A DNA stretch of 61,001 bases from Gekko japonicus (Eukaryota), in assembly GCF_001447785.1 (NCBI RefSeq), contig NW_015174995.1, positions 1 to 61,001 of the forward strand. The letters are read 5' to 3'. The notes below the pieces were generated by a model. It was not told the DNA's origin. It saw only the letters and a list, made by a program, of their open reading frames with translations, and made no database searches. Every line of letters starts with the position of its first letter. Positions within the stretch are counted from its first letter, which is position 1. The translations under genes were made by a program, and so were the position numbers. Below are positions 400-61,001 of the stretch, piece after piece.

Positions 400-435
400 A
401 CTCAGGAGCAACTATAGGGGCAGCGAGTTCTGCAG
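400..435 (+). CDS. 36-nt microexon DSGATIGAASSA
   Basis: Pyrimidine tract + ttag| ... GCAG|gtaagg; phase 1-1. Confidence 0.75.
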
Positions 436-3400
436 GTAAGGAGAAACTTTGGCTTCATAGTACTGTAAAGTTTGAAAGCATTGTCATCTTCATGAGACAC
501 ATTCATCTTCGTTCTTTTTTTCAGAAACCACCACACCAACTGGAGAACATTCAGGTATGAAGACATACAACCATCGTGCCTACTCTTTGGTTTCTCTGTT
601 CGACAATATTCCTGAAGTGAAGATTTGTTTATTCTTGAGAGTGGTTTTTCATAGAAGGAGGGAGGGAAGGAGGGAGGGTGGGAGGGAGGTTATGTGTATT
701 TGTAGCTCACTGCCCTACTCAAAATTACATTCAAAAGCAAGGTTCAGAAAACCTTATTAGTTTTTTTTTCTATTCTTTTAATTTTTTGCTATATTTTTAC
801 ATGTTTTATCCAGTTATAAACCCTTAACCATCTATTATTCTGTATTTTTTGGTCTTTAGTCTGAAGTATTAAACTCAAATTGTTCAATTGTCCTTTCTTA
901 ATAGGGAAAGTGTTCCAACCCTTTTATCATTCTAGTTTCTCTTTTCTGCACTTTTTCCAGTGCTATAATATCCTTTTTGAGGTGTGGTGACCAGAATTGG
1001 TCACAGTATTCCAAATGAGTTTGCAACATCAGTTTATACAGGGGTAGGGGTCATTTCGTAGAAAAAGAGGTCCATTAACGCATTAGCATAACTCATTAGC
1101 ATAACTTATTTGCATCTGCCATACCCCCAAACATGGGTCAGAAGGCAACACCCACTGCTCAGGCTCCACTGGACTGTTTTGGATTGCTAGCTATTGGAGG
1201 GGGAATGTGTAGATCTGTCCTCACAGAGGAGGGAGAGCATGTACCTGAATAAAACTTGGTCTTAAAGGTGCCACTGGACTGTTTTGGACCAGGGGACCAG
1301 GGGGGGGCTCTGCAACTTACCTGGCTTCCTCTTACTCTGACTGAAGGGCTGCTGGGAGCAGTGGGTAGGGCTATTACATGTGCCCACCCCCTGGGCTCTT
1401 TACTGCTGGAGCTCCGCTCCTGTGTGCTCCTACAGGAAATGACCCCTGTACAGGGTCATTATGATACTGGCTGAGTTGCTTTCAATACCCTTCCTAATAG
1501 TTCTGAGCATAGCGTTGGCCTTTTTTTATTTCAGTCGCACACTGTCTGGACATTTTCTGTGAGTTACCTACTACAACTCCAAGATCTCTCTCTTGGTCAG
1601 TCTCTGCCAGTTCAGACCCCATCAATGTGTATTTGTAGTTAGGATTTCTGGCCCCAATGTGCATCACTTTGCACTTGGCCACATTGAACCCCATTTGCCA
1701 TGTTGATGCCCACTCCCGGTCAGACTCCCGGTCAAATTACTCTCAGCAACACTCTCTTTGGCAGTGATATGCTTATTGAGATATATGCATGATCCAGAAC
1801 ATCATTCATGTTAGAACTGGTGATTTTGGCACACAGATGCTTAATAGAGATAATTCAAACCGAGCCCTCTCCCCTTCCCACTTGCACATGTCACAGTCAC
1901 CCTGCCTAGTGTTGCCATCTCAGTCAAATGGAAAATATATGGGTTTGTTTATCTACTTCCTAACCTGGCACAAAAAGCTTCAAGGCCACCTTTCCCTGGG
2001 AAAGGGAAAGGAGGTACATCTTGCAAGAAAAGTTATGGCTCCTAAGAGCAAAAAGTTCCCACTCATTTATCACACTCACCCACCTCCCCTCCCCGTAGGA
2101 ATTCCCTCCCCCCAGTAACTATGACAACCTGAGCGAGCAAAGCTATGCAAGGTTTGACACTCGCCCATCCTCAACAGATCCCTTTGGAATGCCTCACAAT
2201 CCTCCCTGGTTTTCACTACCCTGAACAGTTTCATGCCATCTGCACATTTAGCCACTTCACTGCTTACTCCCAACTCCAAATCATTAATGAATAAAAGCAT
2301 CAGACCCAGTTCTGAGCCCTGCAGTACCCCACTGCTTACCACCCTCCACTGAGAAAATTGCCCATTTATACTCACTCTCTGTTTCCTATTAATTAGCCAG
2401 TTTTTGATCCACAAGAGGACTTGTCCTTTTATTCCATGACTATTGAGCTTACTTAGGAGCCTTTGATGAGGAACTTCATCAAAAGCTTTCTGGAAGTCAA
2501 GGTAATCAACATCTATTGGGTCCCCCTTGTCCACATGTTTGTTCACCTCCTCAAAGAACATTGACAGATTAGTGAGACAAGATCGTCCCTTACAGAACCC
2601 ATGCTGAGTCTGCCTCAATAGTTTTTGTTCATCAATGTGCCTACCACCAACATAACCCGGTATTGATGTCAGACTGACTGGCCTGTAATTTCCTGGATCT
2701 CCTCTGGAACCCTTTGTAAAGATGGGAGTGACATTAGCTACCTTCCAGTCCTGGAGGCAGATTTTAAGGAAAGATTACATATTTTTGTCAGGAGATCCAC
2801 AAGTTCACAATTGAGTTCTTTCAGAACTCTTGGATGTATGCCATCTGGGCCTGGTGATTTATCAGTTTTTAAGTTACCTATCAGTCATAGGACCTTCTCT
2901 CTCATCACCTCAATTTGACTCAGGTCTTTCAACACCCCTCCCAAAATCAGCGGTTCTGGAGTGGGCAAACACTTCTCATCTTCCACAGTGAAGACAGAGG
3001 CAAGAAATGCATTCAGCTTCTCAGCCATTTCCCTATCATCCTTCAGTACTCCTTTTACCCCTTGGTCATCCAAGGGCCCTGCTGCTTCCCTGGCTGGTTT
3101 CCTGCTTCTCATGTATTTGAAGAAAGTTTTATTGTTGGTCTTTATGTTTTTTGTGTTATGCTCCTCATATTCCCTTCTTGCCTGCTTGATCACAAACTTG
3201 CATTTTATTTGCCACAGCCTGTGTTCCCTTTTATCAACCTCACTGAGACTAGCTTCCCACTGCTTAAAGGAATCCTTCTTACCTTTTACAGCTTCCAGAA
3301 TTGCCTCTTCCCTGGTAGTTTCTGTGACCATCTGCTCCACAGCACAGTTATTGAGAGTGTCTAGACACTCAATCTCTCTTTCCCGACTTGAACACATATT

Positions 3401-6400
3401 GACCCAATCAATGTGTGGGCAGCACCTATTATGACGCAGTTATTTTCATCTAGCCACTATCTTTAATTCATTCATCATTTTATAATCCTCCTCTCTCTTT
3501 TGATCTGGTGGGCGATAACAAACTCCCAGTGTTAAGCTACTTTTTGGGTCCACTATTTCAAACCAAAGCATTTCCAGAAGCAAGTCCAATTCTTTTACCT
3601 TCTCAATCTTACTGGACTGCATACAGAGCCACCCCACAATGTTTCCCCTCCATCCTTCCAATGTAATCAGGAATCACCATATCCCATTGATTTTCCTCAT
3701 CCCACCAAGTGTCTGAAGTACCCACAATGTCTATTTCCCCCTCCCCAACACCAAGCATCCCAACTCCTCAATTTTACCATGGAGACTCCTAGGATTTGTA
3801 TATAAACATCTACAATTTCCCATGCATATTAGGCCCACAACCTTCCTCCTGCTGCCTCGAGACCTTGCCAGGCAGTCCATATCATTAGCCACAGTCCCAG
3901 TGGACAATACTAATACATTTCCCTGTAGAAAACTAACACCTTTGAGATGACCCATCGCAAACCAGAGACTTTTCATCTCCTGTCGGCTTTCCCCCAATAT
4001 TCAGTTTAAAAACTGCTCTGTCACCTTTTTTATTTTAAACTGTGGCAGGACCTTTTGGAATTCAATTGGACATCAGGCATATCTTCCTATTATCAACTGC
4101 CTTTTACAGTAATTGGGCTACTTTCGGGGGGGAAATCTCCTTCCCACAATGTTAAATTGTAGAATATTGCAGAAATCATTTCAAATGCCTGAAAAAAATT
4201 CTGGAGGCAGGTTGTAGGGGCTTTTTTTGGAGGAGTTATTTATCACAATTTTTCACTTTCTATCATTCTCCCCCCCCCCCCCCAGACACAGGAGCAGCTA
4301 CAGGGACACCCACATCAGCAGGTAAGCAGAAGTTTTGGGCCCATATTACCGTCATGGTTGAACCCATTATCATTTTCATCATGCTCTTTCATCTTCCTTC
4401 TTTTTTCAGAAACCACCACACCAGCTGGAGAGCATTCAGGTATGAAGCCTTTTCCAATATATCCATGGTGTCTACTCCTTGGACAGTCTTCAAAAATGTT
4501 CTGGATCTCTGGAAGTATAGAAGGATGAATGGGTGGACGAATTGAGGGAAAACGCTAGCTTGAAGGATGAATCGCTGGATGGATTACAGATGAATAGATA
4601 GGTAGACTGATGCCCCATCGAAAAGGCTCTCACAGTTAGCTTAGGTTCCAGAGAGCTGTTCAAGAAGTTGGAGAACTCATGATTGAGGCCACAAGCTCAT
4701 GAAATATCACCACGGGAGGAGAATTGCTGATTCCCTGATTCTCTTCCCACTTCATCAGCAGTGGCCATCAGCTTCTATGAACTTGTATCAGATGGAAAAC
4801 TGCACAGCTCAGATGCATAAATTCCCAGGGTGTCCAACTGGATGGAGGACATATTGGAACTCTCATGCCTATCAGACATATCTTCCTCTTACTGGTTCTA
4901 GTTTAATGAAGGTGCTGGGAACCCAATCTCTTTTAGAGTATTTTAACAACTGAAGAGTGTTTTCTTTTGGTTTTGTCACTGAGGATCCTTCAGTCTTTCT
5001 TTCCTGCTACATTTGACTCCTTGTATTAGTTTCTCTGAGAACCAGGCATAATTCCTGGGGCACAAAGGACCTTTGGGGGCCACAGAAGAAGATCTAGCTG
5101 AGCTGAAGTTTTGGAAACTGAGGTAGTTGGAATTCCAGCCTCACATTTAATTGCCTTGGATTGATATATATAATTAGGGAGAAGGGGGCAGATCTTGGAA
5201 TTATTGAAAACTCTAGTAGGGAAAATGCCATATGATCTTAAAATATGTCTTTGCAGCATTAGTAATGTAGGAATCTTCTTGGACTTGAAAGAAAGTAAAA
5301 CCCTCTGAGTTTGTGGCATATTATTAAGGTGTTCAATCCTCTTTAAGTCAATAAAGAGAGGGTAAAGATCTAGCTTGAAAGCAATATAATTTCCATCATT
5401 CACCCTCTTCTTTTGGTGGGGGGCAGAAACCACCACACCAACCAGAAAACAATCTGGTAAGAAGCTGTTTTACCACTTCCATGAAGTCAACACTTTGGGA
5501 TCACTTGCAAAATGTAAGGGATGAAGGGATGCATGGATGAATGGATCAGTAGCCTGGTACCCCAGCCAAAAAGGGACTCAAGGATAGGGTTCAGGAAAGC
5601 AGCACAAGATGTTGTTTCAACCCGTGATTGAGCTCAGGAGGCCCAAGAACTGGCACCAACAGAAGGGACTTGACCATTCCTTGTTAGCCGAATTGCTCTT
5701 TAGGAGAGGCAATTGGAACAGTTTAATAATCAGGATTCAGGTCTGTGTATACGCAGGATGGGCTATGCCGGTACGTTTCAATTAAGAGACTAAACAGAAG
5801 TAAAACAAAACTTTCTTTACTAAATATATAATTCAATCACACAAGAATAAAAACCACACAGGCATACAAGGACTAAGAAAAACAAGTTAGATATCACAGC
5901 ACAGTTGCATGAGCAGGAATATCGTTGGTGGGGTATATTTACCTACGTCGTGGCTCAGCTCCGAAAACTTCCAGCTGAAGGGAGGGCAGAAGGGGAGGAA
6001 AACGGGGTAGAAAACACGTGAATCCAGACCAGCCGGGAACACGTGGATTGACCTTAGCTGCAGACTAAGGCAAAGCGGTTATCGGGAGTTTGGTATAGCA
6101 AGTGGGACAAAAGAGGTTCAAGCAGACATAGAGGGGTTGTTGGTATGAAGAAGGGTGACCTCTTGGCTCTGTGCACGATGTTTTAAGGTCTCTGCTGCGA
6201 GGGGAGGGGGTGGGCTCAAATGGATTACCAGGTAGCCCGACCCTAAAGGTCAGTGATTGGCTATGATATCAATATTCAATCTATCGATTAACTAAAGGGA
6301 GGTGTCTGGGCGGAGGCAGGAGGTACGTGCCGGGTCACCAAGTAGCGCTGACGTGGATGTTGCTATGTGTAATGGAATTCTATTGTTGGTCTGGCAAGGG

Positions 6401-9400
6401 AGGACTTCTGATGTTAAGCTTGTCAGGTGGAGACACTCGGTCTGGGCTGGCTAATGAGTTTCTGTGTTTGCGATCAACCTTCATGTTTGCATACATGATG
6501 AGCTTAACGACTCTGGGGGCCCCACTGGCTAGATGTTGATCATCCTATGCAGCTGGCATCGTCTTGGCTTGCCCCCTGGTTGAACTCTACGTTCCACAGT
6601 CTCTTCACTAACCCGTTCTGTATCAAGCTTATATTCACAAGGCATAGTCCATAAAATAGTCCAAAATGGATGCTTATGGTAACATCCTTGCTATCGTTTC
6701 CTGTGGTTGAAATGAGGCCTTCAATTTCTACGAAGCTGTATCAGACAGAAAGAAAGAGGAAATACACATGAGATCATAGGCTGTCCAAGCTGATGATGTC
6801 TCTGTGGGAACTCCTTTGAATACATGACCTATTTTCCTCATCATTACTGCTTTTCAGTCGAATCGACCAGATCTGAACCTACACAATTTGTGATGGTTTT
6901 AAATTTCTGAAGAGTGGAAAAAATCTCAATGTACGAAACCATGTTAGGGATGTGGGGGAAGGATATTCCCATCACAGTTTCTGCTTCCTGTTACTTTCTT
7001 GTCTTTTCCTGGTTTGAGCACCAGGCATAGCTTCTGGGGAACCCATTTCAGTGGGTAAGGGGACATTTTTGGTTACTTGTTAATGTCAAGCTCATAAGCC
7101 TTGCCATTTTCTTTATGCACCTTCTTTTTGTTTCTGTTTGCCAGAAACACCCACAGCAATCGCTGGACCATCGGGTAAGGAGCTCTTTCCCACCACATCC
7201 ATGAAGTGAACATTTGGTTACATTTGATAGTAGCTATTGTTAGAAGGACGGATGGATGAATGGCAGAACTGAAGAAGGGAGGGAGGAAGAGATGGAGGGA
7301 GGGATGAAAGATATGTGTATTTGTACCCCACCACTCCACTTAAAGAGATTCAAAAGCAAGGTTCAGAAAACGGGTACAACCAGTTGGCCAGTTCCTGATT
7401 GAGGTCAGCAGACTCATATTGGACCATGACAGGGGACTATTCCTTACCCTCTGTTCACTGTAGACCAAAAGATGCCATTTACAAATAAGGCTTACCAGAT
7501 TGTGAAAGACTCAGTTGATACATAGAATGTCATAGGGTGTCCGAACTGTGGCAGGACCTCTGGAAACTCTATTGGACATCATCAGGCATATCTTCCTATT
7601 CACAGTAATTGGGCCTTTCACAGTAATTGGGCTGTCTTGGGGGGGGATCTCATTCCAGTGATGTTAAATTGTAGAAGATAGCAGAAATCATTTAAAATGT
7701 CTGAAAATGAATTTGAAGGCAGGTTGCAGGGGCTTTTTTTGGAGGCGTTATCGATCATAATTTTTTGCTTTCTATTATTTGTTTTTTCCTCCTTAGACCC
7801 AGGAGCAGCTACAGGAACACCCACGTCAGCAGGTAGAGAAAGGTTTTGGCCCCATATTGCTGTCAAGGTTGAAAGCATTGTCATTTTCATCATACTCTTT
7901 CATCTTCCTTCTTTTTTCAGAAACCACCACACCAACTGGAGAACATTCAGGTATGAAGCCTTTTTCAATACATTCATGGTGTCTACTCCTTGGACACGCT
8001 TCAAAAATGTTCTGGATCCCTGAAGTGCACAAGGATGGATGGGTACATGAATGGAAGAATGGAAAGAAGGAAGGGTAGACTGAAGGATGAATGGATGGAT
8101 GTATTATAGATGAATCGATTGGAAGCCTGATGCCCTACCCGCGAAGGCTGTCATGGTTAGCTTAGGTTCTGGAGAGCTGTACAAGAAGTTGGAGAACTTG
8201 TGATTGACATCATGAGCTCATGAAATCTCAGCATGGGAGGGGAATTTCTCATTCCCTGCTTTGCTTCCCACTGCTTCAGCAGAGGTCTTCATCTTCTACA
8301 AACTCATATCTGATGGAGAAATATACAGCTCAGACACATAAATTTCTTGGTTGGATGGAGGTCACGTAACTCTCTTGGCTATCAGACATTCCTTTCTTTC
8401 CATTCCTGCAAAAAAATTCCTGCTTCTAGTTTAATGAAACTGCTGGGAACCCAATGTCTTTTTGACTATTTCAACAGCTGAAGAGTGAAAAAACAGGATT
8501 CCAAATGCCTCAAAACCACCTATTTTCTGTTGGTTTTGTCACTGAGGATCCTTCAGACTTTTTTTTTCATACTTCCTCTGACTTCTTGAATCCTAAGCCA
8601 AAAAAGGGGAAAGAATAAGGTTCAGGAACACTGGACAAGGTGTTGTTTAATCCATGATTTTGCTCAGGAGGCTAATGAACTGGATCTATGGGATGGGAAT
8701 CGCCCCCATTCATTGCCCTCTGTTCCCAGTGGTTCAAAAGAGGCCTTCAACTTCTATGAACTTATATCAGACTGAAAGAAAGAGCTAATACACATTAGGT
8801 CATAGGCTGTCAAAGCTGATGATGTTCCTGTGGGAAATTTATTGGATAACATACCTATGTGCCTCATCTTTCCTGCTTTTCACTTGAATTAAGCTCATTT
8901 GAAACCACAGCTTTTGTGATGATTTTTCATTGCTGAAGAATACAAAATATATCTAAATGTATAAAACCATGGCATTTATGCAGGGGGGAGTATATTTCCA
9001 TCTCACTTTCTGCTTTTTCTTACTCTTTTTCTTACTCCTCTCCTCGTGTGAGTACCAGGCATAGTTCCTGGGTTACCAATTTCAGTGGGTTAGGGGAAGT
9101 TTTGATCACATATATACGTTCAACTTGATAGCCTTGTTTTTTTTTCATTATGCACTTTCTTCTTTCTCTTTGCCAGAAACAAACACAGCAATTGCTGAAC
9201 CTTCTGGTAAGAAGCTCTTTTCTACCACATCCATTTAATGGACATGTGGTTATGTTTGATAGTAGTTTTTGATGGAAGGATGGATGGATGACAGGATGGA
9301 GGGATGGACAAAGGATATGTGTATTTATAGCCCTCTGTCTTGTTTATCATTTGTAATATTTATTGATGAAAGTATGGATAGATAGATGCACCTTTGGACT

Positions 9401-12400
9401 GTTAAATGTATGTATTTATAGCACTACTCATGAAGAGATTCAAGGGGAAGGTCAGGAAGACTTCACAATTTGTTCAACAGCATGTTGAGTTCAGTTTGCT
9501 CATGGAATTCCGCCATTATCGTATAACTGGCTATTCCATGTACTTTCTTTCCCACTAATTCAAGTAGAAAGCTTGCAACTGTTCTGAACAAACAGCATTC
9601 AGAGAAGTTGTTGTCTGATGTGTATAAGATCATGGGTGTCATACACTGAATCAGAATGCTTTGATGCTTCTATAGAACCTCAGACACATCTTAAGCTGTC
9701 CTCTTTTCCACTTCCTTTTGCTTTATTTAGGCTGCATGGAACCTGTTCCCCTGTTCAATGTATTATAATGCCAAGACCAGAAACATAATGCATGAAATCT
9801 TGTGGGTGTTTTATGATTTATTGATAATTGTTTTGTGCTTTCTCTTTCTTGTTGTTTTTCCTTCCTCCAAGGGCCTGCTATACCTACACTCGCACCCACA
9901 TCTGGAGGTGAAGAAAATTTTGCATACATATTAAAGCAAAGATTAAAAGCATTGTGATTTTCATCTTATACTTTCTTCTTTTTTGCTTTTGCCAGAAACA
10001 ACCACAGTATATGCAGAACCACCTGGTAAGAAACGTTTGTTTATCACATCCATAAAGTGAGCTGTTTGGTTATCATTGAATATTTGTATCACTTGATGGA
10101 TAGATGGACAGATGGATAGATGAATGGATGGATTAATTTATTTGCAGCTCCACCAAATAAGAGACTCAAGGATAAGTTTCACGAAACCTGCACAATAAGT
10201 TGTTCAGCTCTGAATTGAGGTCTGCAGGCTCATCATGTTTCACATCAAGGATGGCTTGATAGCCCATTCCCTGCCCTCCTTTCACCATAGTTTGCCAGAA
10301 GTCTTTAACTCAATTGATTGCATATCAGACTGAGGAAGACAGTCTTCCTCATACATACAAAATACATACATACAAAATCAAAGAATCTTAAAGTTGAACT
10401 AGGACCAGATGGTACTCTATTAGACATCAGACAGAACAGAACAGAAGTTTATTATAACAGTCATAGACCAGATAAAAATAGTTTTACACATTCCTAAGAA
10501 TAAAATACAAATCTGCCTTAAATATACTACTAAAATATACACTATTGAATATATCATTTACTCTATCTCAATAAATTTGAGCTGAACATTTAAATTTATG
10601 ACTTGCATTTAAACATAAATACTTCTGTGGCTGCTATGGTATTTTCTATGTGAACACGTACAAGTTGAATGGAATAGCAGTACTACTAATAATAGCAATA
10701 GTAATAAGCCACACTTCACTTATAAGCAGGGCTATTTTTGGGCAGGAACGCACAGAAACGGAGTTCCGGCTGGCTCCCAAGTTGGCCACGCCCAGCAGGA
10801 ACTCATTAGCATAATAGGCCACACCCAACAGCAGAAACTCATTAGGATTGGCTACATTAGGGGTGTGTGGCCTAACATGCAAAGGAGTTCATGCTACAAA
10901 AAAAGGCCCTGGGTTTTGACAACAAACAAGGTAAACAGAATAACAAGCAAAAGGTGGGTGTGGCTGGATAACCACACTTCTGGTAACATGTGGGTGTGAC
11001 CTAATGTGCTAATGAGCTGTGCTGTCAGGGGTTTGGCCCAATATGCTAATGAGTTCCTGCTGTTGGGTGTGGCCTATTATGCTAATGAGTTCCTGCTGGG
11101 CTTTATCTACAAAAAGAGCCCTGCTTATAAGGCATCCGGTTCTGATGGCATTTTGAAGGACTTATAAAATTAAAATAAACATTATAAATAGTAAGAACCG
11201 CTGTACATAAAGGTAAAAGAAGCTTAAAACAGCAATAAAATGCATTTTAAAATTCTTAAAAAGCAAGCAATAAAGTGCATTTAAAATTCTTAAGAAACAG
11301 GCAGTTAACAGGTGATTGACATTTGACTTCCTGTGTTATTATAGATTTTCTAATTCTTAAAGCTAGCCATCCATATGTAGCCACTAGAAGTGTTACCTCT
11401 GAGTGTCTGTCTGCCAGGAGATTTTTCATAATATGAACTCTTTGCCTACTAGTGAGAGGTAAGGACTTGGGGAGTGGAAGTGATTTACGGAGATTATTAT
11501 ATGCCTTATAGTCGAAAATAATATGTTCTAAATTTTTGATGCCTTTGTTACAGCAGGGACATATACGTTCCTCAAATGGGATTTTCTTATACTTTCCCTC
11601 TGTAATTGCTAGAGAAAGGGCATCCCAGCGCATAAGAGTAAACATTCTCCTATAGTAATGGTTTGACAGTTGGTGAAGATAGGCCATGGCCCCGGTCGCA
11701 CAGGCCAGATAACGCGGGGGGAGGCATGGCTCTTTGCACTGACGCACTTAGACCAGCCAGAACACGATCAGACACGATGGAAGCACACTGCGGTGTCGTC
11801 CGTCAGCGCGTAGGCATCAAGGAGGACAGCCAGGGGAAAGCCACGCACCGGCGCGAGCACACGAAACGATTCCGTCGGCAGCCCGTGGCAAACCATTTGC
11901 TAATACATTTGTTGAGATACTTTTTAACTGCGCAGCTTCAGCGGCATGCCACGGGTTGGCCACGGGTGCACTACGCTTGCCAGATGTTGTGGTGTGATTG
12001 TGCCCTGAAAAATCTGCCCAGCATTCGTGGCTCTCCCGTGGCAAATTCAGCATGTGAACGGCGCCCATAGAACTTATTCTGTTAGTGGGGTCCAGAAGTC
12101 TATTCAATTTCTCTACTCTGCCAATATCGTTCTGCCTATCAATATCTTCATCAGACATATCTTCCTGTTTTTGATTGCCTTTCTGTGTAATTAAGCTGCT
12201 CTGAAACCATACCTCTTGCACCTAGTTTATATACCTTAAGAATGAGAAAATAATTAAATAGCATCAAAAGCATGGTTTTTTTGTTTTTTTGAGGATTTAT
12301 TTATCATTGTTTCTGCTTCCTCTTTCTTCTTATTTTTTCTTCTTCTAAGAACCTGCCATAACTAGTGCGGCACTCATATCACCCGGTAAGTAAAATTTTT

Positions 12401-33400: not shown

Positions 33401-36400
33401 TCCTATTATTTCTCACTTATACACTTTGATTACTTTACCAGAAACAGAAGTCTTGGGTGAAGACTCTTCTGATCTGTCAGCAATAGGTAAGACATTGTTC
33501 CTTTTCTTTTACCTAGTGTGTTAATTGATCAGTCAGAGGGCTAAGCCTGGCTGTCAAAGGTACAAGATTCAACTGTGTCACTGTCAGTTATCATAGGAAA
33601 TGGTTTTCCACTCTGCAGATCACTGTGTGCTCATGATCAAGAGACATTTACCCCCCCCCAAAAAAGAGACTAAAACATCATTTCTATTGCAGGAGCATTT
33701 GGTTTAGTTTGTTAGAAGGTAGCATTCAGTTTCATGTACTTGTTAGCTGTCCGTAGTGATGCTGTTTCACCAGTGTCATTTGCAACCAATCCGGGAAGAC
33801 TCTTTACATGCACAGACATGAATAGACATATACACACAAATGTATTTTGCCTATGCTATTTTGTATTCTGATTTGCTTCAGAGTGAGAGTGCATACAATA
33901 TACCTCCTACATGTTAGCTGTCTGTAAGGAAGTATGGCCACTTGTCCATTCCCTATGGACATTTGCAAAGGGAAATAACAACATGTAGACCTCCATAAGC
34001 CCATAGCAAGCACACCAGAGTCCATAGCAACCCTGGTATCACCCACCACTCAGACAATGGCACGGCAGTTAATGATGACCCTGTGAGTGGCACATGCAGG
34101 CACAGCCAATCACTGTCTGCATATCTGGCCACTCCTTCTCTACAGCATTCCCACTCCTACCCCCCCCCCCCGAAAGCCTGTAAATAAGGAAGAAAGACCC
34201 TGGACCAGCACAACCCCAACAGAGGCATGTGGCTTGAGTGCCCTCTCACCCCTTAGGGGACGGGCATCCGTGCAGCAGATAAGATGCCCCCCCCCCGTCA
34301 CTGGCAAGAGCACGACTGACAGCAAAAGGTCTGCCCACGTGCACCCACATCTGCTTTGATCTAACATGCCTTGTGCATGGGGGGAAATGAAGATTAAAAA
34401 TATACAAGAAAAGAAAGACAAGGAAAAACTTGTTCTTTAGCAAAAGCCTTATAACAAATTTGTCACTTTAGATTGTATTGATACTTTAATGGTATATTTT
34501 GAAATTACTTTGGGGGAAATTTATGGAAGTGCTATATGTTGAACCATACCTTTCATGCATTCTTCACAAGAATGATAAGAGTCTTCATAAGAATCACAAC
34601 AAGAATTATTGCACTCATACTTTCAGAGTTCTGGAGTTCCTTAAAATCTTAACAGAGCTTCTTTGATAAAAAAGCAGTAACAGCAGAAGTCCAACAGCAT
34701 AATCCTATGAAAAGTTACTCCAGTCTATTGATTTTAGTCATTTTAGAATGCAGTTAAGTCTGCATAGGATTGTGATAGGAGCTTCCTAATCTTTTTTTCC
34801 AGAAACACATCGGAAAATCTCTTTAAAAAAAAAAAAGGTTTTGGATAGAGCACTGTGCATGCAGAACCTTATGGCTGATTTTAATCTCTATATTTCATTT
34901 TTATCTTTTTTCTCCCTATGTTGCCTTGGGAATGTGATAAATCACAAGATCACATTGATGTAATTTTTCAAGCACTATCATCAATCATCTCTGTGTATGT
35001 GATTTTACCAATGCACCGAAAAACAAATGGGTTACATACACATACCTAAAAAAGCACACAGAAAGAATCATGATGCAATCATATGTATAAAATTGCTTTT
35101 TGCAGTGTTTTATGAATGCACATATTTGCACTGGTAAGGAAAATAAGAAAAGATGCAGACAGGTTTAACAATAGACTGTGCATGCCCCAATTATGGAATT
35201 AGTAGAAGGAATTCTCTTACTTAAGCCAGTATTCAAGAGGAACAGAATGCATGAGAGCAAATCCAGAGGCAACTCCCTTTCTCAGTTTGGACTGCTGCTA
35301 AATTCTAGCCTCCAGGGTGAAGAAGGCTCAGTCAAAGCATAGCAAAGTCAGGAATGGAACAGGATCTTTCCCTGAATCCTCTTTACAAACCAGACAACTT
35401 GGGAAAGGGAAAGGGCCTGCGGTGATGAAATGACTAGTTACCAAAGCCAGCAAAGTTTACAAAATCCTAATTGGATTGACTATCAGTTCATTGACCATGA
35501 TGAGGGCACGATAGAATAGTTCCTTGGGACAGCTGTGTTTCTGATTACTAGTCTAGGAGGTATGAAAAGTAACTGAGATAAATGCCTTTAAAATGTACTG
35601 GTTTTTTACAATGTACTGGGGTTTTTTTTTACAAATGTACTGTTTTTTACAGTACAAATGTACTGTTTTTTACAAATGTATTGTTTTTTTTTGCAACAGT
35701 ACACAGTAAGATGTACTTTTTTTTTTTTTTTACAAATGTCCAGAAGCTACAGTTGGTACTGCATGTGGCAGACAGTGTGTTGACCGGAGTGAGTCACAGG
35801 ACCCTATCATTCCAGTCTTATTCCATCTATACTGACTTCCATTTGCTTCTGGACTCAATTCAATGTGCCAATATTGACCTTTAAACCCCTGTATGACATG
35901 GGGCCAACATACATTAAGCACCACCTGCTCCCATATTCATGCACTGGATTTGAATAAGATGCAGTTCAGCAAGGATAAGTGTAGAGTTCTATGTCTGCAT
36001 AACAAAAGTCAGAAGCACACATACAGGATGGGGAACACACTTTTGAGTAGCAGTGTTTTGGAACAGGATCTTAGGGTATGGTTGGACTATAAACTAAATA
36101 TGCCAGTCAGGAAGGAAGAAAGGCGGTCTTTGGGTGCATCAACAGAGGCATAATGTCAGAATCTAGGTCAGTCCAAGCCAAATTCCAGAGTCAGAGTCAA
36201 ATGTCAGTTACCGAGAGCAGAGTCCAGTTCAAAGCATTACACAGGGAGCAAGGTCCAACAGTCCAAGGTCATTCACAAGTACAGGGAGGAAGATTTCAGA
36301 GTCAGAGTCAAGAGCCAGTCCAAGGGTCACAGGAATAGAGTTCAGAGCTGTGGTCATTGAATCAAGAGGTTGATGACTTATTGCTTCCACAACATGCAGG

Positions 36401-39400
36401 CTCCAAGCACTGGGTTTTATAGACACTTCCTAACAAGCCCTTATTAACAGCCAGCTGCTTGGAAGTACTGCTGCAACTATTCCAGGCTGTCATTAGCAAG
36501 AAGCTGGCAATGGTCCAGGAGACATGTACTCTGCCTCCTTGCTTGCAGTTCCCTTCTAAGCATCTGTCTCCGGAACGCAAAGCGTGGAGGAGAACCTGGT
36601 GGACTGATCTCACTTAACTGGGTCTCACATGCTGCATCAGGGCTAGGTGCTGGTGGGTCTGGGTCAGCTGCTGGCTGTGAGCCTTGATTAGTCTGTAGGT
36701 CCTCTGCCATTGGTTCAGGGCTGACTATGTGAAGCGCCTCTGCACCTGAGGAGTCCCCTTCTCCTGAGGAGTCTCCAACATTGTTTGTCTCAGGCTGACA
36801 CATGACACATAACATCCAAATCACAATATTTCATAGTCTCACTGTACACCACATTGGTCAGGGCACACCTGGAGTACTGCGTGCAGTTCTGGAGGCCTCA
36901 CTTTGAGCCAGTTTGGTGTAGTGGTTAAGTGTGCGGACTCTAATCTGGGAGAACCGGGTTTGATTCCCCACTCCTCCACTTGCACCTGCTGATGTGACCT
37001 TGGGCCAGTCGCAAGCTCTGGCACAGCTGTCCTTGAAAAAGAGCAGTTTGTGTCAGAGTTCTCTCAGCCCCACCCACCTCACAGGGTGTCTGTTGTGGGG
37101 AGGGGAAGGGAGAGGAGTTTGTAAGCTGCTCTGAGACACCTTTGGGTAGTGAAGGGCGGGGTATAAATCCAATCTCTTCTTCTTCTTCTTCTTCACTTAA
37201 AAAATTATGTGGACAGAATGGAGTGGGTACAGAAAATAGTGATGAAGATGGTCAGGGGCCTGGAGACCAAACCCTACAAAGAAAAGCTAAGGGAACCAGG
37301 AATATTCAGTCTACAGAAGAGTATATGAACAGCTGTCACTTAGAGGAGGGTGCAGAGATGTTCCCCTGTTGAAGCAGAGGATAGGTCTCGTAATAATGGG
37401 TTTAAATTGCAGGATAAAAAATACCGGCTGTATATTAGGAAAAAATGTTTTGAAGTAAGAGAAGTTGAACAGTAGAATCAGCTGCCTAGGAAGATGGTGA
37501 GCTCCCCCTCCCTGGCAGTCTTCAAGCATTAGCTGAACAAACACTTGTTAGGAATGCTTTAGGCTGATTCTGCATTGAGCAGGGGTTGGATTAGATGGCC
37601 TGTATGGCCCCTTCCAATTCTGTGATTCTATGATTCTACCCATCCACTCTGGTCATCTTTGGAGACCCCACTTTGTTTGCCCCTGCCATCCAAAGCTAAA
37701 TGGGTAGCAACCCAAGAAAGGCCTTTATTGGTCACGGAACCAGAACTTGGGAACTCCCTCCCAAGAAAGACTCACCTGCCTCCTTCTATTGATGTCTTTC
37801 ACCAGGAGAGGAAGACTTTTTTGTTTCATCTGGAATACCCTCAGAAATGGTTACTGGCCCTCCTTTTGGTGCTGTTTGTTTATGCATTTTTAATTAAATT
37901 ATTTTATAAGATTAAATTTATTTTTAATTGCTCATTTAAAAAAAAATTAAAACCTTTGCTCCCTTGTGGACTCCAGTCAGGAGGAAAGGTGGCCTTTTAA
38001 AAAGATATTTAAACAAACCAACAAATGAGTGTATAAGTCAACTCTCTGCTTCCCCTCAACAAACTATTTTTGCTGATCTTCTGCCAAATTTTGCCAGTAG
38101 GCCCCTGATTTTGTGGTCATTTCAGTGCTTGAAAAGCTGCCTGTTTGCACGATTTTGCATTTTGTCTTCAGGTTTGTCTTAGCATGAAAATGAAAGTGCA
38201 AAAGTAGTAATACTTCAAAATATTTTTTAATTATAAAATTGATAGATTGCTAATACTAGCAAGTCAATATGGCATATAATTGCTAGAATACTGATGATCA
38301 TATAATCCTATAAAATTTTATTCTTTATTTACAGAATCATCACATCCTTCATCACCAGGTAATAGAATACCATCTCTATTTTTGTTTTTACATGGGTGAA
38401 CTCTATTTCTGGGAAGGAAAGCATGATACAGCTTTGCTCCAGCTTTTAAGTATTAAAGGTCACAGGTGACTGTAACGTTTTGTTCTTTCTAACAGAAAGT
38501 GCTGGTGTTCCAGATCTTGTAACAGGTAAGACATTAGTCCTATGTTACCTAAATTTTAGTTCATCAGGCAATGAACTAAGCTGGAATCTGATTGTCACAA
38601 AGTTCTACTATTTCACAATTAGATGATATAGGAAATGTTCTCCTAGCCTTCAGGGAACTATGTGAAATAAGCAATTGGATTATCTCACCAGTTGGGTAAC
38701 ATTAAATTACATAGTACACCTGAAAATATGAAGCTGCCTTATATTGAATCAAACTCTTGGTCCATCCCAGTCAGTACACTCTACTCAGACAGGCCGATGC
38801 ACTCCAGGGTCTTAGGCAGAGATATTTCACATCACCTACATCCAAATTGTTTAACTGGAGATGCCAGGAACCTGGGATTCCTGCATGCTGAGCAGATGCT
38901 CTACCACTGAGCCACAGTCCTCCACCACAGTAGATCCTTGCTCTCTGCAAGAAGTATCTTATATGTATTTTCATTCTGAAGCAAGTCGGAGTACCTCTCT
39001 GGCACTGGTGACTGAGAAGTATGGGCGTAGATTAACTCTCTAAATATTTCATTTATTTAACAATTCCAAAATATCATTGCTCTTTCATGTTACTTAGATG
39101 CAATGCATTAGCTTCCACTGAGATGAAGAGCCGTTTTAGTAGAATCCCCCCTGATAAATGTTTTTGTATGTACTGTAAGGATCAAGTTGACTCAACTGCC
39201 TGTATCCTTTTTAACTGCCCCTGTTATAATTCACTTCCCAACCCATATATTACTCCCTGGACTGACTGCCAATAGAACATTTCTGAACAGCAGAAACTAA
39301 AGATTTTACTGTCAGGCAAGATAAAGAAGTGTACATGTGATCTAGCCATATTTATATACGCAGTTGCAAATTATCTGTAACATAATTTGACATATGGCTT

Positions 39401-42400
39401 GTGGGCTGTTAAATTACAGGGAAAGGAAAGGAAAAGTCCTATGCTGTGCACCCTACCTACTGAACTATGAGGTATCCTAGCTGAGGTTTATGAAGTGCTG
39501 GGGGGGCTGTGATTGGCTGTGGCTTTAGTCATCATCATATGCTCTGCCTGGGCTTTTGAGCGGGGCATGCCTGCAGGGGGGCTCTTTGCCTGCCTTGTTG
39601 TATCAGCTCCTACCGGTTATATCATGGTTTTGGGCAGCATAACTTTACACTGTTGGGGGGCACCTAAGGGTGCTAACAAGCTCCCGCCCTGCCCCCAGAT
39701 GCATCCCTTTCTCTGCTGATGCAGCAGTTTGTGCTGAGTTGCTCTGCAAAGTTGCCACAGCAGTGCCCGCCTGGGGCATAGAACTGCCAGGGTGCTTCAC
39801 TGGTGCATCTCAGAGATGCACTGGTGGAACACTTTGCCAGCTCCCTGCATCCTTTCAGACGCCCCTCTCTCTGGATTGTGCTGTTAGTTTTGTTTCTCGC
39901 CATATAATAAATGGCACCAATTTAATCTAATTAATATTTGTTTCAAAATTCTTATTTTCTCTTTTTTGATACAAAACACTACCATTCTTCCCACCTGGAA
40001 AAAATTTTTTAACATGTTCCATCATTCTGAGTCCCAAATACATGAAAATTGTTGAAAATTTAGATTGGGAGTTTAGGATGGACTCTCATGCCAAAATGGA
40101 CTCTGTGAAGATCAAATGTACTGTCTGGCTCACTAAATGTAAAGATTATAAATCCTTTGGCCCACTGAAAACACTGACCAATGTTTATTAGATCATCAGT
40201 TGTTAAATCTTTGCCTTTAGTTATTTAGTTAAGATATTTGTGCCACCATTCGCCCAGCATGGGAACTAATAAAGGCAGCTAACAAACCATCAGTAAAATA
40301 AAAAAATAAAATATAATACAAAGTTTTCCACCCATCCTGTAACTTAGCCAATTTTTAATTTTTAAAATGGTTGGCATGTAGAATGTGATTGATTAAAATG
40401 ATAAAGTGTCAGTTTGACAAGATTGACATTTGCTTTCTTCATATTTTAACGCTTACAGCTCCTAAGACATACAGAATACCTTCAAGAGGTAAATTCAGCT
40501 TTCTCCATTAATTATATAGCATATACAATTAAAATGTGGTTTGGGGTTGACCTTCTTCTGGTGTTCTCTGTTCATGTTTACCTTACAAGTATAGGTATGA
40601 ACCCAGCAAGGATAAAGGCAATTGAAAGGAGCATTTGATGGGGAGATCTGCTGGTAGAGGAAGGCTTAAGCTGCCCTCCCAGATTTCCTCTGATGTGAAC
40701 AGACTCTCTTGAAAACAGACTGCAAGAGAACAGAAACCATTCTGACTTTTATTCTTTTTACATTACAACATCGATGCACTGCATTTCTGCCCTCATAAGG
40801 GCCACCAAGGGAGCCAACAAAACATACATAATAAAATCACATCTTAAAAAAACATTAAAATCAGCAAAAACAAATCATTCAAGCAATTATAATCAGAGTC
40901 AAAATACATACCAAAACATAAAAGCAATGATTGAGAACAGTGGGCAGGCAAGAGGGATCACTGAGGAAATGCCAAACAAAACAAAAAGTCTTCACCCACT
41001 GACAGAAGATGGTAACAGAAGGAGACAAATGAGTATTCCAAAGGAGAGAGTTGCAGAGTTTTGAGGATGGACTGAGCTCCCGTCTCTGGCCCCAGCTCCT
41101 GCCAACCTACCAGTTCAAAAGCAAGAAATTCCAAGTAGATAAATAGGTACCACTTCAGTGGGAAGGTAGCAGCATTCCATGCACCTTGGCGTTTAGTCAT
41201 GCCGGCCACATGACCACATGAAGAGCGCTGGCTCTTCAGCTTGGAAACAGAGATGAGCACTGCCCCCTAGAGTCAGATTTGACTAGCTTTCGAGCAAGGG
41301 AAACATTTACCTAGTGAGAGGGTTCTCTTTCAGGTTGCCACCCACCTAATCTCAGAACGGGGGGCAACTGAAGCAGAGCCTCCAAAGATGTCTGCAGTGA
41401 TTGGGTAGGTTTATAACGGTAGGTTCAGAGGGTAGGTTGGCCTTTAGGTTTGCTGGTTCCAAACCATATATGGCAGGGGTGTCAAACATAAGGCCTGGGG
41501 GCCAGAACCAGCCCACCCAGGGCTCTTATGCAGCCTGCAAGGAACTAGTGCAAGGGAGGGAACAGGAGACTGCTTGAGGGGAAATGGGTAGAGCCACTTT
41601 GACTGTGGCTTCAGCACGGCAGAACAACCTCATCTACAGCAGTCAAGCAGCGTGGGAGCATCTGCCCAGTGCTGCACTGCTAACTCTCTAATCTGCCCAT
41701 ATGGCTTTTCTTTTGCACCCCCCCCAGCCCATGAGGCCTTGCAGCGAGGATACACCAACTCAGAGCTTACCAGCTGCTGTCCTTTGTACAGTTTATGTCT
41801 CCGGTACCTGGCAATACATTATATGACACAGATGGCCCAGCGCGACAAAGTGACATTTATGTCAGATATGGCCCTCGTAACCAATGAGTTCAACACCTGA
41901 GATACACAGCTTTAAATGTCAACACTTTGAACTCTGCTGTGGAAAACGTTGGGAGTTTAGTGTAGATGGGATAAGACTGGAGTGATATGGTTAGGCTTGC
42001 CAAGTCCCCCTGGGGGGTGGAGAAACCCCCGCCCGAGAGGCCCGTTACCCACTGTCGGTGGATCGGGCCCCGGGGGAACCCCACCCCCAAAGCACGCAAC
42101 ATGCCCAACGTCAGCATGTCACCCGGAAGTGACGCAGTCACGTCGGGCGCATTGGGGGCGGGGTCGCGGTCGTCCAAGGGAAAACTCTATGGTTTTCCCT
42201 TGGATGATTGTGGGCCCACCCCCAGCGTGCAGTACAAACTAAAGGGGGGTATTTTTTCAAGCCTGCCACAACCAGGTGCAGTGTACAGAATTCTCAGCAG
42301 AACCAGTGCCACTGTGGCAATTCAAGGACTGATCTTAAAGCACAGAGTCACAAGAACTCCAAGCCAGGGGAGGGGTTGCAACCCCAGAACAACCAGTTCA

Positions 42401-45400
42401 GTGTGCAGAATATCCAGCAGAACACAGTGCCACTGGCACAGCAAGCTTAAAAGGACTGATTTCAAAGCACAGAGTAACAACAAGTCCAAGTTGGTGTGTG
42501 TGTAAATTTTGCAAGCTCTGTGCAAGAAAATGGAAAGGGAACACAAAGGAAGGAGGGCAAAGGGGGAAAAAACCTCTTGAAACTGGCAAGACTAGTTTGA
42601 AACTGACAAGAGCAGTGGGGAAGCCCATAGAAACCCTAAGACACAGAGATAAAAAAGAAAAGGAAAATACAATCCCCAGGAACCTGCAATGCTGGCTTCC
42701 AATCATCTTGGAAAATATTAAATATATCCAGCATTTTCCAGATTTTTTTCCTGGTTTTTCGAAAAATCCCAGTGTCTTTGAGAAGCTGAAATATACCCCA
42801 AAATACCAATAAGGTATTCTTGGGGTATATTTTCGGCTCAGGTGTATCCAAATTCACACCCCATGTCAGGATTAAGTTTCAGTTCATTAGTCTGCATCCA
42901 CTCCAAAACTGCCACCAGACACCAGTTCACGTTTTTTACAACTTCCCTGCAATCGGCTGGAAGAGCGAGATAGAACTAAACATCATCTGCATATTGGTGA
43001 CAACCCAGCCCAGATCTCCACATGACCTCACCCATCAGTTTCATTTAGATGTTAATGAGCATAGGGCACAAGATAGAACCTTGCAGGATCCCACAGGACA
43101 AAAGCCAAGGGGCTGAACAGCAGTTCCCCCTCTTCTGAAATTTACCCTCTACATAGTACCATAGCCCCACAGAACAGCACCTCCCAATCCCAGCCCAGAA
43201 AGGCAGTCCAGAAGGATATCATGATTGACAGTATTGGACAGATCCAGGATAATCAATGGAGTTGCAGTTCTCTGTCCATCTCAGTGTGCAGGTCACCAAC
43301 CAGGGCAAACAAGATTGTTTCAATACCATAAAACCAGATTGGAAAGGATCTAACAATTCTCTTCAAGGAGCTTGAAGCTGTCCAGCCATTTTGTTACGTG
43401 CAGCTTTATATATACAATTCACTACTCAGTTTCTTTCTTATGATAAAGTTTCATATAGGACATCAGATATAATTATTTTGGTACAATAGGAAAACAAAGG
43501 ATGTGGTTGTGTTCCTACAGCCATATGAATCACAAATTCACAAAATAATCCCTTAAAAGGAGGGGTCTAATGAAGCAAAATATGTGGGAGGGGAAGATTG
43601 CTGTACTGACTTCAGTAGCTTGGGTTCCTTGAATGCAAAGTCTGCAAGTACAGCGGAAATACTGAAGCTGATTTATCCCTCAGAAATACCCATGATCACT
43701 TCTCCAGGAGCCCAAGCTAGTCTACTGTTGTTTGAACTAATAAGGCAGGTCCTATTATTGAGCAAAGAGAAAAGCTCCCTCCAGTGGAAGACTTGGATTC
43801 TATTGTTAGACAGAAAATATTCCATTATTTACTTTACTGAATTTCTATCTAGGAAAATGGGGGTGTAATTTGGATTTTCAGCCCCAATTGCCAAAATGTC
43901 TTGGGTTGTCAGTGTCAGGGGTCATTTCGCAGAAAAAGAGGTGCAGGAGCTCATTAACATAACTCATTAGCATAGCTTATTTGCATATGCCACACCCCCT
44001 GACGTCACCGGAAGTGTGTCAGAAGGCAACACCCACCGCTCAGGCTCCACTGGACTGTTGGCAGAACAACCTCATCTACAGCAGTCAAGCAGCGTGGGAG
44101 CATCTGCCCAGTGCTGCACTGCTAACTCTCTAATCTGCCCATATGGCTTTTCTTTTGCACCCCCCCCAGCCCATGAGGCCTTGCAGCGAGGATACACCAA
44201 CTCTGAGCTTACCAGCTGCTGTCCTTTGTACAGTTTATGTCTCCTGTACCTGGCATTACATTATATGACACAGATGGCCCAGCCTGACAAAGTGACATTT
44301 ATGTCAGATACGGCCCTCGTCCAGAAGGATATCATGATTGACAGTATTGAAAGTCACTGACAGATCCAGGATAATCAATGGAGTTGCATAGTGATGGGTG
44401 AACTTCCCTCTAGGCTCGTGGGTGAATAAATTACAAAGCAAAAAAGGAGCACATTAGGGGAAAGGGTTTTGGTTCTTGAATGTACTCTTTTGTCTTGCAT
44501 TTGCTTGCTTTGGTGTATGAGTACCCTGCCCTCTTACCCAAAAGCAGCTGCTCGTGCATGGGCCGCTCAAATCCCCTCTTTGGTGGCTGTGATAGTTTCC
44601 TTCTTCTTTTCCTTGGAAGCAGCAGTAGTAGCACCTCTTTCTTTCTCTTTTCCATTCCCCTCCACAGTAGGTAAGGTCTCTGGGTGATATGTGTGTTAGG
44701 ACATGATGTTTTCCCACAGTGTTTGACTATTGCAAGGCATCATAAGAAAATGACACACCTTACCTATCCTATTGCTTGAAAGGGCAACCTAATAGCGGTT
44801 CAAGCATCTGGGTGTGGGGAAAGGACAGATAAGACAAATAGGAAATAAAGGCATAGTGCTGCCACTCCAGAAGGGGAGAGAGAAGATAGGGATAGCTAGC
44901 ACTAGATCGTGAACAAAGTCAGGAACTAAAATTGCATTCATGTTTAGTTGTGTGACACTGTTGCTTCTTTTCATCAATCAGTGATCTCGTGTTCTGAAAG
45001 ATACATGTATGTACGTATCAGCAAACATGACCTCCAGGCTTTGGGCTACAATCCATGGGATTTGCATCTGAATCATAATTCCTGTAGATGTAAAACTACT
45101 CCAGGCTACGTTTTCTGCAACATACCACTCCATGGTTGTGGCACAGTAAAACAAGTAAGAAAAATGGTGTTGGGGCGGTTATTAAATATAAACTGTATTC
45201 TGGTTTCTTTTGAAACAAAAATACATTCTGGTTCTATTTTATATGGATGGGGAAAGTATTTCTTTTATTCACTGTGTGAGCTGGTAAAGACATAAGGCTC
45301 CTTCTTCATTGTGGGTAAAAAAAGTTGTATGCTGACTTAGGGAAATGTATGCTTCTTAATTCAATACCACCCTACTCTCCTCTGGAGTTCCTTACACCCT

Positions 45401-52296: not shown

Positions 52297-52360
52297 NNNN
52301 NNNNNNNNNNNNNNNNNNNNNNNNNNNNNNNNNNNNNNNNNNNNNNNNNNNNNNNNNNNN
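52297..52360. other. Assembly gap (N run)
   Basis: 64 N. Confidence 1.
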
Positions 52361-60036: not shown

Positions 60037-60551
60037 GACAGCTGGAGGAGCAAGAATGACCTCTCATGCGAGAGGTGGAATTTTCCCCTATGAGTCCAAG
60101 GCCACAACTGGCTCAGGGAGGCAGGAAAACGTTTCACCCCGCCCCCCCTGCGGGCATCGCAACTGCCGCCGAGAACATCAGCAGGGCTCCCGAGCAAGCC
60201 AAGGAAAGGGAAGGTGGTGGAGCAGCTGGAGACATTGTAATGAGCACTCGAGCCCCGCCCCCAGTAGCCCTCAGGCCGGAGAACCTGGAGCAGTCTTGGG
60301 AGGTGGATTGGCAAAAAGCAAAACCAAAAGTGCAGGAACTCAAGAGAACTCCCATAATGGAGCCGGTTCCTCTTCCACAGCCCAAAATGCGACCCACAAA
60401 CCCTGAGCTTGCTTTTTCTCATTTGCGAGTCTGGCCTCCGCACTCTTTTAATGAGGCAGCCCTGAAGCTTGGGGCGGCGGGAGTTTCTTTGCACGCAGCT
60501 TGTGCGGCTGGCTGAGTGCCTCTTCTGCTTGCCCACCTCTCGCCTCCGCAC

Positions 60552-60867: not shown

Positions 60868-61001
60868 NNNNNNNNNNNNNNNNNNNNNNAATCAATCTGC
60901 AACTCTGACCACTGTGCAGTGCTGCCTCTACTGATCTGTAATGTTCCAGAGGTGTTGTAATACCCAGTTTCTCAGACGAGTGTATGCCTTTCTATTGGTC
61001 C

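Follow-up and report, generated by a model that had tools for sequence, protein, structure and literature searches.

Layout of the locus

The window analysed here is a stretch of 61,001 bases (G+C 42%) from contig NW_015174995.1 of the gecko Gekko japonicus. Its + strand carries a four-exon module encoding a ZP-N domain, a ZP-C domain and a putative transmembrane helix. Between positions 400 and 40488, 5' of this module, lies an array of 26 well-supported and about five doubtful small exons of 18-126 nt (Table 1), the supported ones all in phase 1-1. The exons are best explained as the 3' two-thirds or more of a single + strand gekkotan gene, a reading that is probable as a whole. An initial annotation of this DNA had predicted a stalk of microexons in front of a ZP/transmembrane protein, and the intact ZP-N/ZP-C/transmembrane module at 44982-51400 agrees with this order. 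Three assembly gaps interrupt the window (16321-16362, 52297-52360 and 60868-60889).

Splice signals and symmetry of the small exons

The peptides quoted in the initial annotation were found where it had placed them, on the + strand and in the frame set by the phase-1 acceptor. The splice contexts are also as described, with a pyrimidine tract, an AG, the exon and then G/GTAAG or GTATG (the slash marks the exon end). For example, exon 400-435 follows a long pyrimidine tract and AG and ends at the donor G/GTAAGG, and 89 nt further exon 525-554 has a like acceptor and the donor G/GTATGA.

Region 1-45000 was scanned on both strands by splice signals alone, requiring at least 15 pyrimidines in 20 positions, AG, and at least 6 of 7 matches to G/GTRAGT, with any exon length of 12-72 nt. 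The + strand gave 27 candidates, 23 of them with a length divisible by 3, compared with 2 of 13 on the - strand. When a length divisible by 3 and an open phase-1 frame were also required and each donor was counted once, 16 candidates remained on the + strand (not independent events, since the array copies are paralogues) and none on the - strand. The same strict scan of 100 first-order Markov resamples gave a mean of 1.8 candidates and a maximum of 6, so that the cassettes stand out from shuffled controls. The pattern of the array is real and strand-specific. A gene on the opposite strand was rejected on the lack of strict candidates there, and chance pairings of pyrimidine-AG with GT were rejected by the shuffles.

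The initial annotation had counted about 28 symmetric phase-1 microexons; 26 exons are well supported here, and at least five decayed partial cassette copies also exist. The claim that all are multiples of 3 fails at 17129, where the copy is 38 nt long to a strong GTAAGG donor and the frame is broken. Three larger exons had been overlooked, of 63 nt (16580-16642 and 17842-17904) and 126 nt (23122-23247). The 45-nt candidate at 35744 and the 51-nt candidate at 44620 are doubtful, and the latter is without a counterpart in the gecko Paroedura.

Duplicated cassettes and their decay

The core of the array is a tandemly duplicated unit of a 36-nt exon, an intron of 86-90 nt and a 30-nt exon, with 12 aligned copies, some of them decayed. 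The first exon is exactly 36 nt long and open in phase 1 in 10 of the 12 copies. The second is 30 nt long in 10 of 12, and it has been remodelled to 63 nt and 126 nt in the copies beginning at 17720 and 23006, respectively. The intron keeps its length of 86-90 nt in 10 of 12 copies, and the AG ahead of the 30-nt exon and the G/GT behind the 36-nt exon are invariant. Taken together, the AG and GT sites are preserved in nearly all copies. The cassettes are themselves nested in larger repeats: the three 5'-most lie within units of 3.5-3.9 kb (spacings of 3886 and 3511 nt) and others within units of 0.8-2.5 kb. Cassette copies 4 and 2 are 89% identical over 235 nt.

An nhmmer profile built from the eight best cassette copies showed further partial or decayed copies at 4994-5070, 5369-5499, 16509-16603, 22383-22453, 23648-23705 and 27500-27575, the significant ones all on the + strand. 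The copy at 17129 has a 2-nt insertion and measures 38 nt to its GTAAGG donor, or 18 nt should splicing take place at a weak GTGCAC donor. The 30-nt donor is lost in the copies at 16580 and 17842, which extend to 63 nt, and the copy at 23122 extends to 126 nt; all three extended exons remain multiples of 3 in phase 1-1. Single exons of 30, 36, 18, 24, 30 and 30 nt (at 27646, 29505, 32184, 38335, 38496 and 40459) lie 3' of the cassettes.

The intronic assembly gap at 16321-16362 adjoins a cassette copy without its 5' half, the homology beginning at 16509. Since the exons on both sides of the gap are in phase 1-1, the reading frame is independent of it. The repeat homology extends to window position 9. 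Thus, the window opens within the array, which probably continues upstream of position 1.

The short cassette introns (for example 436-524, 4322-4409 and 7055-7144) share a recurring block around TTGAAAGCATTGT.ATTTTCAT. A search for conserved RNA structure across the cassette gave 0 pairs. Judged from the alignment, the intron may be under a constraint of its own and may hold splicing signals for the microexon pairs. In 4 of the 12 cassettes (7137-7144, 9169-9176, 9988-9995 and 17834-17841) the second exon has TGC directly 5' of its CAG acceptor (TTTGCCAG). UGC near the 3' splice site is the enhancer motif of SRRM4-dependent microexons, and its presence here is no more than a lead.

The ZP module and a putative membrane anchor

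The first ZP exon (44982-45154) takes a phase-1 acceptor, as the initial annotation had it, and matches the Pfam ZP-N family PF23344 with 38.6 bits (cut-off 24.7). PF00100 (ZP-C) is matched with 38.6 and 28.5 bits on two exons (cut-off 24.6). All ten cysteines common to the Rhineura DMBT1-like protein and Monodelphis DMBT1 align with cysteines in the window exons. By eye, RKIRKAR is seen behind the last cysteine, followed by VGVVVGPVQL, and the last exon holds RRKR and a hydrophobic helix of ~23 residues; these are a putative basic cleavage site, external hydrophobic patch and C-terminal anchor. The module is intact, which speaks against a pseudogene. No further ZP-N exon is needed between 45154 and 46823, since exon 46823-47220 carries the second half of ZP-N, and the reading that one is missing there was rejected. 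The first ZP-N exon also has an extra cysteine (44984-45154, ..NSCRCK..), which is common to Sphaerodactylus and Paroedura and is found in neither Rhineura nor marsupial DMBT1.

Relationship to DMBT1

The largest ZP exon, used as query in an exhaustive HMMER search, matched DMBT1-type proteins with SRCR, CUB and ZP domains and three close relatives of 60-74% identity. Two of these three carry names: the Paroedura picta protein P0004 (XP_077204003.1) is entered as 'uncharacterized protein LOC143842725', and P0003/P0151, from the gecko Sphaerodactylus townsendi, as 'DMBT1 protein-like'. The named matches of the ZP module are DMBT1 or DMBT1-like. In a maximum-likelihood tree of this exon, the window and the two other geckos form a clade with support of 100/100 on a long stem branch. 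The clade is nested in squamate DMBT1-like proteins (Rhineura, Phrynosoma, Lerista, Pogona and snakes) with support of 97/95 and 94/88, and so far it contains geckos only, as far as seen in the tree.

DMBT1 (gp340, salivary agglutinin, hensin, muclin, CRP-ductin) and reptile DMBT1-like proteins have the closest ZP module, with 37-54% identity. They share with the gecko gene a repetitive, duplication-prone gene structure and a transmembrane and cytoplasmic end, which is putative in the gecko, and their S/T/P-rich linkers, placed ahead of the ZP domain as well as between domains (PMC3100851, PMC5435793), are a probable counterpart of the gecko linker. The gecko gene differs in that its linker is expanded to ~26 separate exons, its 22-residue unit is split into 36-nt and 30-nt exons, its clade stands on the long stem branch, and the 45 kb ahead of its ZP module contain neither an SRCR nor a CUB exon. 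tblastn with SRCR-containing relatives (P0002, P0007 and P0010) matched only the four ZP exons in the window, and no CUB exon was found by tblastn in the 61 kb; the precomputed Pfam domains of P0004 are also without CUB.

In DMBT1 the SRCR domains are separated by S/T-rich SIDs of 20-24 residues, and TTT and STP regions are present as well (PMC3100851, PMC5435793); one pair of 36-nt and 30-nt exons encodes 22 residues. In squamate DMBT1-like relatives a short S/T/P linker leads from CUB or SRCR to ZP and ends in '..VPSRA' or similar, and the linker of the window ends in '..IPSR'. Because of its position, this ending, its composition, the size of its unit and the S/T-rich SIDs of the family, we interpret the array as a DMBT1 SID/STP linker that has been expanded, in which the phase 1-1 would be inherited from the family and the copy number changed by duplication.

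The Paroedura gene model

P0004 has 975 residues, with a repetitive linker of ~650 residues ahead of the ZP domain, and its only Pfam domains are ZP. Like the window gene it combines a long repetitive linker with ZP and a putative transmembrane helix, and its ZP exons are 61-67% identical. About 12 window exons, within 16580 to 40488, have collinear counterparts in it, and the '..IPSR' exon is joined straight to the ZP exon. Exon-by-exon alignment compared with 300 composition-matched shuffles showed six exons to be individually significant (p<=0.007). Order and length are kept between the species, including the 18-, 36- and 126-nt exons. Exon 17842-17904 ends in A, so that the next codon starts with A and lysine is predicted, and P0004 has K there. 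The 126-nt exon is matched to P0004 481-494 along its first third (23122-23180) in a frame differing from that of the remainder. The species therefore differ by a compensated pair of 1-nt indels, the overall frame being kept.

P0004 differs from the window gene in that other units are amplified, namely 18 residues of GTGVTTGSDTTA-GSHTST and 7 residues of EPGTAAG, and in that the 5' part of the model looks unreliable. Its residues 1-170 contain an out-of-frame reading of the 36-nt exon type (QEQLQGH..), duplicated intron-like stretches and no signal peptide. As queries, residues 650-975 found only marsupial DMBT1, and residues 300-660 found only P0004 itself and two unrelated low-complexity bacterial matches. 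P0004 may be an orthologue or a close paralogue of the window gene. Ab initio prediction is unlikely to place exons of only 18 nt, which makes transcript alignments the probable basis of the Paroedura model. The earlier expectation that gene predictors would miss the array applies to the Sphaerodactylus and Rhineura models, which are ZP-only and have no signal peptide (317 residues in Sphaerodactylus), but not to the Paroedura model, which carries it.

The same evidence bears on a possible, if rather doubtful, arrangement in which the gene encodes a full DMBT1-type protein and the window covers only its C-terminal part. Exons for SRCR and/or CUB domains and for a signal peptide would then lie upstream of position 1 and the array would be a very long SID/STP region. 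This differs from the preferred reading only in architecture and is compatible with it. The window opens inside the repeat array, sister squamate proteins have CUB or SRCR before the linker and ZP, and the Paroedura model is without a credible N terminus or signal peptide. However, 45 kb upstream of the ZP module hold no SRCR or CUB exon, and in Paroedura the ~650 residues before ZP likewise add no other Pfam domain.

Table 1. Linker exons, ZP exons and the intronic gap of the window, with the counterparts of the exons in the Paroedura picta model P0004 (p values from the shuffles).
Position	Strand	Feature	Evidence and remarks	P0004 residues
400..435	+	36-nt phase 1-1 exon, DSGATIGAASSA type, cassette copy 1	pyrimidine tract-AG, G/GTAAGG, cassette alignment	
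525..554	+	30-nt phase 1-1 exon, ETTTPTGEHS, cassette copy 1	splice signals	resembles 302-311
4286..4321	+	36-nt exon, cassette copy 2	splice signals, cassette alignment	
4410..4439	+	30-nt exon, cassette copy 2	splice signals, cassette alignment	
5427..5456	+	30-nt candidate, ETTTPTRKQS, half-decayed cassette, doubtful	pyrimidine tract broken by G run	
7019..7054	+	36-nt exon, cassette copy 3	cassette alignment	match, p=0.007
7145..7174	+	30-nt exon, cassette copy 3	cassette alignment	
7797..7832	+	36-nt exon, cassette copy 4	cassette alignment; weaker donor GTAGAG	
7921..7950	+	30-nt exon, cassette copy 4	cassette alignment	
9053..9088	+	36-nt exon, cassette copy 5	cassette alignment; weak donor GTTAGG	
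9177..9206	+	30-nt exon, cassette copy 5	cassette alignment	343-351, p=0.017
9872..9907	+	36-nt exon, cassette copy 6	cassette alignment; donor GTGAAG	
9996..10025	+	30-nt exon, cassette copy 6	cassette alignment	
12350..12385	+	36-nt exon, cassette copy 7	cassette alignment	
12475..12504	+	30-nt exon, cassette copy 7	cassette alignment; weak donor GTACGC	
16321..16362	.	assembly gap, intronic	3.8 kb past exon 12475-12504; 217 nt ahead of the acceptor of exon 16580-16642	
16580..16642	+	63-nt phase 1-1 exon, former 30-nt cassette exon minus donor	weak donor GTCTGT	322-341, assigned solely by position and size (p=0.25 for the best local match, 333-341)
17129..17166	+	38-nt frame-breaking cassette copy, probably dead exon	18 nt if GTGCAC donor at 17147	none
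17257..17286	+	30-nt exon, cassette copy 8	cassette alignment	342-351
17720..17755	+	36-nt exon, cassette copy 9	cassette alignment	352-363; p=0.003
17842..17904	+	63-nt exon ending in A		364-384; match 366-383, p=0.003
23006..23041	+	36-nt exon, cassette copy 10		469-480; match 470-479, p=0.007
23122..23247	+	126-nt phase 1-1 exon, basic and aromatic, not mucin-like		481-514; match 483-514, p=0.003
27646..27675	+	30-nt exon, EPPKAFSYST		possibly 515-523
29505..29540	+	36-nt exon, ..MRKLQFA		524-535; match 525-535, p=0.003
29730..29759	+	30-nt candidate ending in A, doubtful	donor GTAAAA	none
32184..32201	+	18-nt exon, ATSEET		536-541 (AASEEK), by position
35744..35788	+	45-nt candidate with Cys, ending in A, doubtful		positional correspondence only
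38335..38358	+	24-nt exon, ESSHPSSP		577-584; match 578-582, p=0.027
38496..38525	+	30-nt exon, ESAGVPDLVT	splice signals	
40459..40488	+	30-nt exon, ..YRIPSR	counterpart in other squamate DMBT1-like proteins also adjoins the ZP domain	residues adjoining the ZP domain
44620..44670	+	51-nt candidate, hydrophobic, doubtful	good splice signals	none
44982..45154	+	ZP-N exon 1, in phase 1, out phase 0	Pfam PF23344 E=1.4e-9; tblastn	
46823..47220	+	exon 2: ZP-N end and ZP-C start	Pfam PF00100, tblastn, tree	
49512..49774	+	exon 3: ZP-C end, basic RKIRKAR site, hydrophobic patch	Pfam; family cysteines 5/5	
51252..51400	+	exon 4, last coding: RRKR, putative transmembrane helix, short tail	tblastn; stop 51398-51400	

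Composition and possible splicing of the linker

The first 15 exons encode 34% S+T and 49% S+T+P. A tally of 29 exons, in which two exons are off register by 1-4 nt with their lengths right, gave 28% and 40%, and the exons from 16580 onward have mostly 14-36% S+T+P. Thus, the description of the linker as a mucin stalk rich in T, S, P, E, A and G suits its 5' half but not its 3' third. Its length is about 330-360 residues (~363 with the 29 tallied exons) instead of the ~290 first estimated. Since the 5' half is rich in S, T, P, A, G and E, it is probably O-glycosylated. Classical mucin PTS repeats are usually encoded in one large exon. The gecko linker is likewise S/T/P-rich, repetitive, extracellular and presumably O-glycosylated, but its S+T content reaches only ~34% at best and its 3' third is not mucin-like.

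Phase 1-1 symmetry is usual for shuffled extracellular modules (Patthy's class 1-1 modules). It is also needed for in-frame tandem exon duplication, and the symmetry is therefore no special evidence for a splicing code. The initial annotation had taken it as a pointer to one; DMBT1 already has S/T-rich linkers (PMC3100851), which weakens this argument further. Since every unit is in phase 1-1, the gain, loss or skipping of a unit preserves the frame, and alternative splicing of individual exons is possible on the sequence.

The initial annotation went further and proposed that combinatorial splicing of the microexons could determine how long the stalk is and which O-glycans it bears, as in the micro-exon genes (MEGs) of schistosomes. 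This is compatible with a duplicated DMBT1-type linker, and we consider it unlikely. Any subset of the units stays in frame, several exons have weak donors or acceptors and would be skippable, and the Paroedura model is without counterparts of 17129, 29730 and 44620. However, these missing exons are the ones that look dead or doubtful in the window, and the splice sites of most exons look strong and constitutive, with long pyrimidine tracts and G/GTAAG. The databases searched hold a single protein with the array, in a single isoform, and the symmetry is expected from exon duplication without any splicing rationale.

CD44 variant exons and CD45 exons 4-6 are alternatively spliced O-glycosylated stalks. 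A literature search on microexon-encoded mucin domains found nothing relevant. The frog mucin FIM-C.1, which is polymorphic via alternative splicing, is a precedent for splicing-based length variation of an O-glycosylated stalk (PMC7177656), and MEGs, with symmetric exons of 3-81 bp, are another precedent (bioRxiv 10.1101/2023.06.21.545858). Their coding region is divided among numerous very short symmetric exons, with long introns in between (bioRxiv 10.1101/2023.06.21.545858). Symmetric exons of at most 81 nt also make up most of the gecko region, where 25 of the 26 supported exons measure 18-63 nt, all multiples of 3 in phase 1-1. The resemblance is one of analogy, there being no homology. 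MEG exon skipping is documented, whereas that of the gecko exons is hypothetical, and MEGs encode small secreted proteins, whereas the gecko array would encode a linker on a ZP membrane protein. DMBT1 is thus the better frame of reference. A bolder version of the combinatorial proposal is more unlikely still: the ~26 symmetric microexons would be used in many combinations, setting stalk length and glycans of a surface or secreted ZP-module protein per tissue or cell on top of germline copy-number variation, in a vertebrate counterpart of MEGs that arose from DMBT1 by loss of SRCR and CUB.

Other features of the window

Tandem units of 174-176 nt (two arrays), 393 nt and 171 nt are found at 18822-19139, 19799-20179, 59290-60038 and 60547-60867, the last array adjoining the gap at 60868-60889. 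The gene introns contain dispersed repeat pairs of 91-99% identity (2429-2938 with 23738-24219, and 41618-41878 with 44060-44320), which are probably young interspersed elements. A + strand stop-free stretch of 290 residues lies 3' of the gene (56636-57505). It has no Pfam match and one weak ESM Atlas lead, a CCDC117-like feature with a score of 0.89 and low recognition. The stretch may belong to a neighbouring gene as an exon, represent a retrocopy or have no meaning at all.

Discussion

The window gene is probably a lineage-specific member of the DMBT1 family whose linker has been expanded by duplication of small phase 1-1 exons. In the proposed protein, the C terminus would consist of a complete ZP-N/ZP-C polymerisation module, with basic cleavage motifs, a transmembrane helix and a short tail behind it. 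Ahead of the ZP module, 45 kb would encode an extended linker from ~26 small phase 1-1 exons, with a few dead or doubtful ones among them. The array would have grown by tandem duplication of the unit of a 36-nt exon, an intron of ~89 nt and a 30-nt exon, nested in repeats of 0.8-3.9 kb. Copies would later have decayed or been remodelled, donor loss giving the 63-nt and 126-nt exons and a 2-nt insertion the dead 38-nt copy, so that the linker would be the outcome of birth and death among phase 1-1 exons within tandem repeats. We infer that the gene is expressed, that its product is O-glycosylated, released by furin and polymerised, and that the 155-nt exon-intron-exon unit is recognised as a splicing unit.

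Several observations weigh against this interpretation. Several exons have weak donors (GTTAGG, GTACGC, GTCTGT and GTAGAG), and the signal peptide and the 5' end of the gene lie outside the window. The sole supporting gene model, P0004, is computed, and its first ~170 residues look mis-modelled. No significant alignment of a cassette to a DMBT1 SID was obtained, the likeness being one of position, size and composition. Between the paralogous cassettes the 36-nt exon is 60% identical, the short intron 69% and the flanks 60-63%. The exon is thus conserved less than the intron, and sequence conservation alone is no proof of coding constraint. The initial annotation had named cassettes no better conserved between species than their flanking intron DNA as evidence against itself, and between paralogues this is the pattern found. 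Composition, length, phase, splice sites and open frame are kept between the paralogues and the sequence itself is not, which fits a linker under compositional constraint.

These observations also bear on the reading of the array as mostly a graveyard of pseudo-exons or a prediction artefact, with a functional transcript that uses few exons or none. The decayed copies, one of them frame-breaking, the exon-intron comparison between paralogues and the ZP-only models of other squamates would fit such a reading. However, the ZP-only models are without a signal peptide and some are without the first ZP-N cysteine, and they are therefore truncated rather than alternatives. Copies that are ~60% identical retain the exact length, the phase, the open frame and the splice sites, and exon order and length match Paroedura down to the 18-, 36- and 126-nt exons, so that a graveyard is very improbable.

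The gene is annotated inconsistently among squamates, as ZP-only stubs in Sphaerodactylus and Rhineura and as a long model with a bad 5' end in Paroedura, and the exon table given here could seed better squamate annotation. With its 36-nt and 30-nt exons on either side of an 86-90-nt intron of conserved length, the cassette lends itself to testing how the splicing machinery recognises microexon pairs. If the exons were used combinatorially, the gene would be a rare vertebrate example of a splicing-coded glycoprotein stalk. Read as an expanded DMBT1-type linker, the array shows the remodelling of a pattern-recognition and mucosal glycoprotein family in one reptile lineage, in which linker exons, normally spacers between SRCR and CUB domains, would have been amplified into the bulk of the protein.

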